A DNA stretch of 64,000 nucleotides from the NCBI GenBank assembly GCA_020536535.1, contig JAHLWZ010000798.1:62001-126000 (forward strand). Direction: 5' to 3'. This DNA comes from Pelomyxa schiedti (Eukaryota; Protista; Evosea). This document shows, in pieces, positions 2,150 to 32,147 of this stretch. A program made the position numbers and the translations under genes. The stretch's first letter is position 1. Every line of letters starts with the position of its first letter. Below the pieces are notes generated by a model, which worked only from the letters and a program-made list of their open reading frames with translations, was not told where the DNA came from and did no database searches.

Positions 2150-3492
2150 TCAGGACTCATTCGTGGCCGAAACAACTGCGTTTGGCCTGTTTCCACCATC
2201 TTGGCAATCCCAGAAATCTCTGACAAAGCTGCGGCACCCATCATACACCCTATTGGCACAGGATTCCCACTGCATATTGCAGAAGCCACCGCCTTCCTTG
2301 TCCTCCACCACAACGTACTTGTACTCAAATCTTTGTCCCCGGAGTGGCAGCCTAGCTTTCCACATCCCCCCTTCAGTCCATTGCATTCGGTTTTCTGGAG
2401 ATGCGGTCCACATTCCCAGCATCGGATTACTGCCCACAATATGTAAGTTCTGCCCGAAGCTGGTTATATAATGCACACTGAATTCCACAAGTCCATCTCC
2501 ATCGTCCTTCCCCTCTTTGTCTCGGATATTTGCGCTTGTGCCAGATGCGGGCCTCTCGGGCGAGCCAACCAAGTCCGAGACGGATGTAACTGTTGTATTC
2601 CTTTCTGCCAAGCTCTTTGCCGATGCTGCAACGGCCACAGCCACCGCTCTCTGACATGCTAATCTTTTCCCAAATGCAATGAGCTGCTGCCTGAATCCAG
2701 AATTTGGGGAAACGATTGGCCTTGCTGCTTTGGCAGCCCTGAGTGCTGCAGTGAAAGTCATTCCTTTGCGTTGCATAAGATATGCTATAACGATAGTGGC
2801 GCTTCTGCTCATCCCCCAAACGCAATGTACGAGGACTCGGCCAGATAGAAGTCCTTGGTCAATGAAATCTATGGCACGCTGGAAATGGCTGGTAATGTCG
2901 GCTTTTTCATCATCTGGAAGCCTGAAGAACCATAAGTTCAATCGAATGGGGAAAAAAAGGGGGGAACGTACGCCATGGCCTCCAGTCTGACGTGGCTCGG
3001 AAAGGCTTTGTAGTGAGCAACCATATCAGGAATGACCGCAACAGACAGAACATGTGTTATGCGGAAACGAGAAATAACCTGAAAGCTCATGAGTTTGTTA
3101 CATAATTTAAAGGGGGAACCAACCTGCTGGTCATATGCGTTAAGTTGGTCACCCAAATACAGCCCCTGGATGATCATGTCAGGATCGGGCCTGTGCTTCG
3201 GGATGTACTGGTTCCTCGCGGGGTCGAACACAAAGTGCTTCTTGAACTCACCCCACGGCATCGGTGGGTCCACCAACGACTCGTTCTCATCCTCCGAGTC
3301 GTCCGAGAATGACTCGGCGTGCGTCGCGCAAGCGCCGCCGCCGCCGTGGACGTGGCCGCCGACTTTGCCGAACACAAAACGTCGCTGCGCCTGGGTATGA
3401 GCTTGGTTGGTGCCGCTGGCGTCGACGATGGCTTTGTTCCGAGTGTTGTTGCTGTTGGTTGACTCGGTTGTCGTGTTGCTGAGTGACGGCAT
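2150..3492 (-). CDS. Dual-specificity protein phosphatase with C-terminal CBM20 starch/glycogen-binding domain
   Basis: DSP motifs PDMIIQGLYLG, ITHVLSV, DDEKADI and catalytic VHCVWGMSRSATIVIAYLM; CBM20-like VEFSVHYITSFGQNLHIVGSNPMLGMW...FEYKYVV...WESCANR; two GT-AG introns (~3124-3080, ~2970-2925); ATG at 3492. Confidence 0.88.
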
Positions 3493-29644: not shown

Positions 29645-30890
29645 ATGGGACAACGTTATTCGGCTGTGGCTGTGCGGCAGAGTCTGACTGATGTATCGCG
29701 TGACGTGGTGCATTCACTAGATACAGACAGGTGGTATGACGTCGTGTGCAAGCTGGCGTCGTGGGACCGGTATTCTTTAAACTCCAAAGTACGGTCGGTT
29801 TATCGTATCGTCACTGTGAAGCGGGAGTCTTCTAACTTCGTAGTTTTTAGAGTATGGCTGAGGTGAGGGAATACCTCAAGGGCATTATGGGAAGTATTGG
29901 AGGAAACTTGGTTTCTGACACACAAGAGGTTGATGTTTTGGGTACTCCTGGCACGAACATCATTGGTCGCATCAAGGTACTGCCACCGAACTCAATTAAC
30001 CGAAATTATACAAAGAATGTGACAGGGTGCACCAGGGAGTACGAAAAAGGTAATTGTTGGAGCACACTATGATGCAATTTCAGAAAACCCTGATGAACAA
30101 CCTGCTCCAGGTGCATTGGTATCAATCAGTTCTGAAAAAGAAAAAAAAACCTTTTACCATTTAACGAAAATTAGGATAACGCAAGTGGGGCAGCTGCTGT
30201 CATCGAGCTGGCTCGAGCTTTCTCGAAGTTTCCAATCCTCTGAATGATGAGTTCATATTCTCATCTACCATAGAGTTACACCTGCCATGGATTTAGAGTT
30301 TATCCTATTTGATGGCGAAGAAGTGGGGTTTAAGGGTAGTAGAACCCATTCTGCTTCACTTGACAAATCCACGAAGACAGTCTTCATGTTAAACATTGAT
30401 ATCCTTACAGAAAATAATCAATCTAAAACCTGGATATGCCTTAATTTCTCGTTCACATACCATTGGCTTCAACCAGCCTGACCCTACATTATGTAAGCAA
30501 TTCCGTGCCACAGTACCTCTAGTAATAGCATGCTTAGTTGTGGAAACAGAAGCGCACAATGGAATGCTAGAACTTATGTTCCAACATGCAAGTGCCCAAG
30601 TTAGTTCACCAATTCCCATAAAGTTTCAACTGGACACATGGGGTTCAGATCACATGCCATGTATGCCGCCCTCGAAGTTTTTCCTCTTATCCTTGCTAGA
30701 TATTGCTCTGAAAATTCCAGCAGCCCTAGTTACATTTGAGCACTGCACCAGCTACCCGCACCACCACCATCACCTGGACCTCCCTAGTGCAATCAACAAA
30801 GCTGTTGCCGGTAATGTCATGCAGGTGGTGGGCTCAGTGCTCTGCCTCATGTGCTTGCAGTCTGAAGACTTCCATGACTACCGGCCCTAA
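29645..30890 (+). CDS. M28 family zinc peptidase
   Basis: NIIGRIK, VIVGAHYD, PGALDNASG, FDGEEVGFKGS, MLNID-TIGF, GSDHMP and a C-terminal His region. Confidence 0.9.
30399..30456 (+). other. U12-type (minor spliceosome) AT-AC intron, 58 nt
   Basis: 5' ATATCCTT, branch TGCCTTAAT ending 11 nt before the terminal CAC; removal joins G|AT to Asp, giving NIDTIGF and avoiding the TGA at 30479-30481. Confidence 0.88.
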
Positions 30891-31026: not shown

Positions 31027-32147
31027 CTACTGGCGTTTATACCACCAGACATCCGCGTCTATTGGCCATAGTTTATGCACAATGAGAGCAACTAAGTCCC
31101 AGTTCAATCCTCTTGCCGGGCTTTTCACCCCAAGCCTGTGGTGCTGTGCACACAGAAGACTAAGGGCAGCAGGTCTGCGTGCACAGACTCCAATTGTTTG
31201 CCTCGTCTGACTATGCCACAAAGCGATGTATGTAAAGTCGCGGCCAACAAAATCCCCTCCAGTGGATATGGCCACATTGTTGAACCTTGGGTGCTTGATC
31301 ATTTCACAGGCAACTTCCCACCACTTCTCTGTAATTGCCCACTCGAACAACGTGATGGATGACCCTGGGGTGATGCAGCAGTGTGGATTGAATGTGTGGT
31401 GTGATGTTACCTTGAGCGCCACATTAGTAGTGGTAAGGCCCAGCATGGGAACTCTTCGGGAGCGTTCATCCCCAAAGTCCTTGGCAAAATCCACGCATTT
31501 GGTCGCATCAAAGTCAGGAATGTCAATGATTTGAAGAGCCGCTTTCCGCAAGTCATATTTCAGAACCATGGAAAAAGGACTCCTAAGTGACGTACTCCAC
31601 AGGGAGCGGAACTTCTTGTGCTTGATGATGGCAGCAACCACTTCTCTGCTGACAGGAAATTCACCTTCCCGCGCGGCGCTCATCATAGCATAAAAGTGTT
31701 CCATTGCCGAGAACCTCTCCGTCTTTGCCAGCGCAATAGCAACGGCATTGCGACTTTGACGTAGGCATTCAAGAAACAGCGAGCCTGCCTTGCCACTGAA
31801 CATCGCGTTTGGGTCGAAATTGGGGTGCTTCACCAGCCCCAACAGTTGAGCTGTCCTGCTCGAGTCCCCTAGCCAGTCCTTGAACCAGCTAAGCAACTGC
31901 TCTGGCTTCAGGCTCCTGCTAGGGAAATTTGGGCTCGAATCGTCGTAGTAATGGTTCTTGATGTCTTGTTGCCTCTCTGCGTTTTACGATACATTTGCAT
32001 TAGCTCTTTGGCGTTGACCGGTAATGAGTAGAGAAATGAACGACACTGTTTCATACCAACGCCATATGAAACCAAGGAGCTTTCAATTGCCCTCCTCATA
32101 GCCTTCCTGTCAGCCTCATCTACATCTTGGTGGTACCAACTATCCAT
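31027..32147 (-). CDS. Hypothetical protein with ankyrin-like helical repeats
   Basis: 289-aa ORF plus a 5' exon (MDSWYHQDV...) joined by a GT-AG intron; repeated HPxF/FDxN motifs (KHPNFDPNA, IPDFDATK, KHPRFNN). Confidence 0.65.

Follow-up and report, generated by a model that had tools for sequence, protein, structure and literature searches.

A probable U12-type AT-AC intron in an M28 peptidase gene of Pelomyxa schiedti, at a codon interrupted by GT-AG introns in its paralogs

The gene for an M28 zinc peptidase in Pelomyxa schiedti is interrupted by a 58-nt segment (30399-30456, plus strand; positions are those of the window, the whole 64,000-nt stretch of DNA analysed here) that, judging from its sequence, is with high probability a true intron of the minor class (U12-type, AT-AC). 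We conclude with high confidence that the locus as a whole is best explained by a genuine minor intron within an intact M28 gene, at a position that predates the divergence of the gene subfamily, in a copy that most probably retains the older intron class. Minor splicing in this species has already been published, with 90 minor introns listed by Larue & Roy 2023 (PMC10639083), a count made on annotated introns, and the headline of an initial annotation of this DNA is therefore correct but not new. What is new here is a contrast in intron class at one fixed position among four paralogs, together with an excess of AT-AC over GT-AG among canonical minor introns of ~14:2.

The intron is in phase 1 and splits the Asp codon (G/AT) of the sequence L-N-I-D-T-I-G. 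It starts with ATATCCTTACAG at 30399 and ends with TTCAC at 30456, so that its termini are AT (30399-400) and AC (30455-30456), one of the two pairs (AT-AC or GT-AG) accepted for U12-type introns. The 5′ splice-site motif ATATCCTT at 30399-30406 agrees with the minor-class consensus /RTATCCTT, and the branch-site box is CCTTAAT (30439-30445). Its branch adenosine, at position 30444, lies 12 nt from the 3′ end of the intron, within the ~10-15 nt before the 3′ splice site that are expected of a TCCTTRAY-type box. Six of the eight positions of this consensus match, the first being G rather than T, and the box stops short of the full TCCTTAAC. With the GUAAGG box of the U12 snRNA encoded in this genome it can base-pair throughout, one of the pairs being G-U. 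The complete arrangement (ATATCCTT, 20-50 nt, CCTTAA, 6-12 nt, AC) is present at a single place in the window, compared with an expectation of 0.01 from 100 shuffles, while the 5′ octamer by itself does not exceed chance, with five RTATCCTT sites against 2.7 expected. The other four of these sites lack a branch box and were dropped as candidate minor introns.

The reading frame also bears on this assignment. The two open reading frames that flank the segment (30287-30481 and 30396-30890) are one base out of register, and since 58 is 3 × 19 + 1, removal of the segment restores the frame. The initial annotation had described both the canonical AT-AC intron and the joining of the two out-of-frame ORFs, and the motifs, spacing, termini and offset are all as it described them. 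It had further held that splicing rebuilds the N-x-D zinc-ligand motif (NIDTIGF), which is accurate only in part: D-T-I-G-F, the frame and colinearity are restored, but the Asp is not rebuilt, because the intron begins with AT and the unspliced sequence already reads N-I-D (GAT ATC).

We rebuilt the host gene exon by exon, and all protein comparisons were likewise made exon by exon. The gene comprises eight exons and seven introns, six of them GT-AG introns of 39-62 nt and one the AT-AC intron, and the complete M28 product is expected to be ~296 aa long; all features are on the plus strand. Exon 0 (29645-29788) begins with ATG, spans 48 codons and is colinear with bacterial M28 proteins, and the 62-nt GT-AG intron that follows (29789-29850) is placed by frame and by colinearity with these proteins. 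Exon 1 (29851-29976), identified by its translation, is followed by a 49-nt GT-AG intron (29977-30025) recognised from its sequence, and then by exon 2 (30026-30118), which carries the zinc-ligand motif G-A-H-Y-D. A 56-nt GT-AG intron not present in three paralogs (30119-30174) leads to exon 3 (30175-30227) with its D-N-A-S-G motif, and a 46-nt phase-2 GT-AG intron that is common to the paralogs (30228-30273) leads to exon 4 (30274-30398), which contains F-D-G-E-E and ends with L-N-I and the first base of the Asp codon. Downstream of the AT-AC intron, exon 5 (30457-30492) supplies the last two Asp bases and continues with T-I-G-F-N-Q-P-D-P-T-L, exon 6 (30538-30660) contains W-G-S-D-H, and exon 7 (30700-30890) includes the stop codon.

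Two further GT-AG introns, both in-frame and stop-free, separate these last exons: one of 45 nt (30493-30537) that is not found in the paralogs, and one of 39 nt (30661-30699) at a position where the paralogs also have an intron. With 30493-30537 removed, the distance from the Asp to W-G-S is 49 residues, equal to that in two of the three paralogs. The downstream ORF of the initial annotation (30396-30890) does exist, but colinearity with the paralogs indicates that it is not a single exon and holds both of these introns. Their retention would add 15 and 13 residues, respectively, and leave the ORF unbroken, and a naive ORF reading takes them as coding.

The M28 ligand motifs are found in conserved order, with H-Y-D in exon 2, D-N-A-S-G in exon 3, G-E-E in exon 4, N-I-D across exons 4 and 5, and S-D-H in exon 6. 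Each of the five co-catalytic zinc ligands (H, D, E, D, H) is present, as is the Glu that acts as general base, and the motifs align with those of bacterial M28 proteins. Exon 4 alone matched Pfam PF04389 with 22.1 bits (cut-off 21.3; profile positions 53-91), exon 2 scored 13.6 bits against the same family, and the genome profile search gave 27.9 bits at the host locus. Other searches with short pieces returned little: a word search with the 143-aa piece from the downstream ORF, under a length filter that leaves out products of ~296 aa, gave no match, exon 4 (41 aa) recovered only unrelated repeat proteins when run with HMMER against the whole library, PDB sequence searches with exon pieces gave only His-tag noise, and a profile query built from bacterial M28 scaffolds and single exon pieces retrieved only relatives of the bacterial scaffolds, with no Pelomyxa protein among the 120 matches listed. 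On the minus strand, the neighbouring ORF 31030-31896 is 100% identical to the hypothetical protein Pelo_10556 [Pelomyxa schiedti].

To identify the splice sites we enumerated all GT/GC-AG or AT-AC pairs that keep the frame (n = 93), and 30399-30456 is the only one for which both exon ends are colinear with the paralogs. Its junction, L-N-I/D-T-I-G-F, shows no indel relative to the three paralogs or to bacterial M28 proteins, which in the exon-by-exon comparison read I-M-D-M-I-G-Y without interruption at the equivalent site. Frame-keeping GT-AG pairs do exist at this gap, and the published annotation of P. schiedti contains only GT-AG (98.41%), GC-AG (1.59%) and one GT-GG intron, with no AT-AC (PMC8887013), so that one could suppose that an ordinary GT-AG intron bridges the gap; a gene finder limited to GT-AG/GC-AG would need to choose a solution such as 30380-30410 (31 nt) or 30380-30476 (97 nt). 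We regard this as very improbable, given that every GT-AG or GC-AG option loses or replaces conserved residues. The 31-nt option removes V-F-M-L-N-I-D, adds 15 unrelated residues and falls under the 39-62 nt range of the gene's other introns, the 97-nt option removes 13 residues including the zinc-ligand Asp, and the donor GTCTTCATGT of the GT-AG alternative is poor. Less probable still, in our assessment, is that no intron exists and that the motifs coincide with a frameshift, in a pseudogene or through an error in an assembly that derives from amplified single cells. In favour of such a coincidence, the 5′ octamer alone is no more frequent than chance allows, but the full U12 pattern is expected only 0.01 times per window, the interruption falls exactly at the intron site of three paralogs, and the catalytic motifs are all intact, as are seven other splice junctions.

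Entamoeba, a relative of the Pelomyxa lineage, has lost the minor spliceosome. Searching the P. schiedti assembly (52,367,397 bases in 5337 contigs) with Rfam models at their gathering cut-offs, we recovered U11 (67.5 bits, cut-off 39), U12 (58.2, cut-off 53) and U6atac (62.7, cut-off 33), all above threshold and with conservation of the box in U12 that recognises the branch site and of the 5′ end of U11; these genes support the earlier statement that the organism keeps a minor spliceosome. The initial annotation had proposed a search for all four minor snRNAs as a check, and the fourth, U4atac, was not found with the Rfam model at E-values up to 10, while a U4atac pattern built from complementarity to U6atac matched only in a coding region. 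Nor did the genome yield the Pfam domains PDCD7 and zf-U11-48K, in a search that is weak with tiny exons and hence uninformative. The U6atac gene (G000:C841:53279-53397) reads GAGCCGAGAGA against GAAAGGAGAGA in the Rfam consensus; this alters the box responsible for pairing with UCCUU at the 5′ splice site, which is GCCGA in place of AAGGA. Second, sub-threshold copies were also observed for U12 (G000:C859:7899-8035, 41.1 bits, lacking part of the 3′ domain) and U6atac (G000:C792:78562-78691, 29.1 bits); it is possible that they are variant genes or pseudogenes.

The components recovered suggest how the intron would be recognised. U11 snRNA would pair with ATATCCTT at the 5′ end, and U12 snRNA would pair with CCTTAAT in such a way that the branch A, 12 nt before the intron's end, bulges out. 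U6atac would then take over together with a U4atac not found in the assembly, and the exons would be joined inside the fourth zinc-ligand motif, L-N-I-D-T-I-G, within its Asp codon.

Counts across the genome point to an unusual balance of minor-intron subtypes. The ATATCCTT...CCTTAA...AC pattern had 23 genomic matches compared with eight in the reversed control, with lengths of 49-63 nt, while its GT...AG counterpart had five matches compared with eight in the control. When the branch box was restricted to TCCTTAAC and the gap to 15-45 nt, there were 16 matches (two in the control), 14 of which begin with AT and two with GT; with a gap of 46-76 nt there were four (two in the control), all beginning with GT and three of them copies of one repeat. 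By these sequence counts, strictly canonical minor introns of short length would stand at about 14 AT-AC to 2 GT-AG, the opposite of the usual ratio, and AT-AC would seem to be the main canonical minor subtype in the P. schiedti genome. The three repeat copies (G000:C380:2565-2642, C386:80502-80577 and C1502:197-272) are nearly identical ~76-nt GTATCCTT...TTCCTTAAC elements, which from their sequence resemble a minor-type intron with GT-AG ends, housed in a mobile element or a repeated gene. In several ordinary GT-AG introns (29977-30025, 30119-30174, 29789-29850 and L018:1224-1270), TTAAC or CTAAC lies ~8-22 nt before the AG; such motifs in major introns could inflate the branch-site scores of automatic minor-intron classifiers.

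These counts also bear on the published tally. Since the annotation contains no AT-AC introns, and since intronIC shifts boundaries only where they are annotated as non-canonical, we infer that AT-AC introns such as 30399-30456 very probably lie outside both the published annotation and the published count.

A genome search with exon 4 identified exactly four members of the subfamily: the host gene, one gene on contig C545, and a tandem pair on C636. All four are interrupted in phase 1 at the same Asp codon; in the other three, where F-M-(L/I)-N-(I/L) precedes the first Asp-codon base and M-I-(G/A) follows the intron, the intron is GT-AG. The introns of these three begin with GTGATT, GTACAA and GTACAC, are 54, 42 and 47 nt long and have no minor-class motifs, and by sequence they are plainly of the major type. 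A GT-AG phase-1 intron is also found in the equivalent codon (within L-A-L-E) of a distant M28 paralog on C918, while two other distant M28 paralogs have no intron at that codon. A further distant M28 paralog lies on the minus strand of the same contig as the host gene (G000:C798), and one of its introns (~143,820-143,865) ends in CTCCTTAAACCCTTTAG, which places a minor-like branch box 9-10 nt from the AG; the 5′ end of this intron, GTTCCCC, is not minor-class, and the box could be due to chance or be a relic of a converted minor intron.

The four subfamily genes are 44-51% identical over ~158 residues aligned exon by exon and are nearly equidistant, with the host gene marginally the most divergent. 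Intron positions vary among them: introns between P-G-A-L and D-N-A-S-G and after D-P-T-L are found only in the host gene (paralogs compared: L007:480-1320; L018:900-1760 and 2200-3000), an intron between W-G-S and D-H is common to the other three and missing from the host gene, and the C545 gene and the second gene of the C636 pair share an intron 33 codons into the last block. This variation points to active gain or loss of introns in a single old gene family. Given its marginally greater divergence, its two private introns and its lack of the intron between W-G-S and D-H, the host gene is probably the sister of the other three.

Because the Asp-codon intron is common to four genes with only 44-51% identity, its position predates the divergence of the subfamily. 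The initial annotation had hinted at intron gain, and a recent insertion finds no support given the same codon and phase in all four genes. The position is old, and what differs among the paralogs is the intron class, which has switched. In the literature, the usual direction of such switches is from U12 to U2, by way of a change of subtype from AT-AC to GT-AG (Burge et al. 1998 as summarised in PMC2831892), and on the basis of this published asymmetry we infer that the minor class is most probably the older state, retained in the host copy, and that the other three were converted from U12 to U2.

Parsimony alone is tied on the direction, because the four genes are nearly equidistant and the host copy looks to be sister to the other three, so that one change suffices for either direction. 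The converse scenario, in which the intron is minor-class but was derived from a major GT-AG intron in the host copy only (U2 to U12) and represents a minor-intron gain in the Pelomyxa lineage, has several observations in its favour: GT-AG is the majority state at the equivalent codon (three of the four paralogs plus the distant C918 gene), minor introns are more numerous in Pelomyxa than in most amoebozoans, with few of them shared with other lineages (PMC10639083), and one reverse U2-to-U12 case is documented, in Diptera (PMC2831892). We nonetheless consider it unlikely, as it would require altered termini, a 5′ motif of 8 nt and a branch box to be acquired all at once, and as it runs against the direction usually reported. 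If it did hold, which we doubt to the same degree, the intron would be a rare instance of AT-AC birth from GT-AG, and together with the ~14:2 excess it would imply a minor-intron repertoire larger than published, skewed towards AT-AC and partly made within the lineage. Retention of the older minor class in the host copy, with conversion in the other three, remains the reading that we favour.

In itself, the finding is a well-supported AT-AC minor intron in a species whose minor splicing had been described before, and the general picture is unchanged: this is very probably a real, ordinary minor intron, and the contrast among its paralogs is modestly interesting. As a set of four paralogs with one intron position and two classes, the subfamily provides a compact test case for the movement of introns between spliceosomes. 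An annotation without AT-AC introns also implies that genes like this M28 peptidase are probably mis-modelled, and that annotation-based counts of minor introns miss a subtype that is seemingly dominant in P. schiedti.

The intron resembles known U12-type AT-AC introns in its ATATCCTT 5′ motif, its TCCTTAAC-type branch box 12 nt from the 3′ end, its AC terminus, its lack of need for a polypyrimidine tract, and the presence of cognate U11, U12 and U6atac genes in the same genome. It differs from them in being very short at 58 nt (although this is typical of the P. schiedti matches, at 49-63 nt), in having the branch box CCTTAAT, and in that the U6atac of this genome has GCCGA instead of the consensus AAGGA. 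The host gene shares with the M28 zinc aminopeptidases (PF04389) the motifs H-x-D, D-N-A-S-G, E-E, N-x-D and S-D-H in canonical order, while the best-matching bacterial M28 proteins have a ~140-residue N-terminal extension that is missing from the Pelomyxa gene, which in turn has seven introns. Compared with the minor introns of Larue & Roy 2023 (PMC10639083), the species and the intron class are the same, but that set is annotation-based and very probably does not include AT-AC introns such as this one. Lastly, the locus matches described cases of U12/U2 class switching (Burge et al. 1998; Lin et al. 2010, PMC2831892) in that the same codon and phase hold a minor intron in one homologue and major introns in the others; here, however, the four homologues compared are old paralogs (44-51% identity) of one protist genome, and the minor copy is of the AT-AC subtype.
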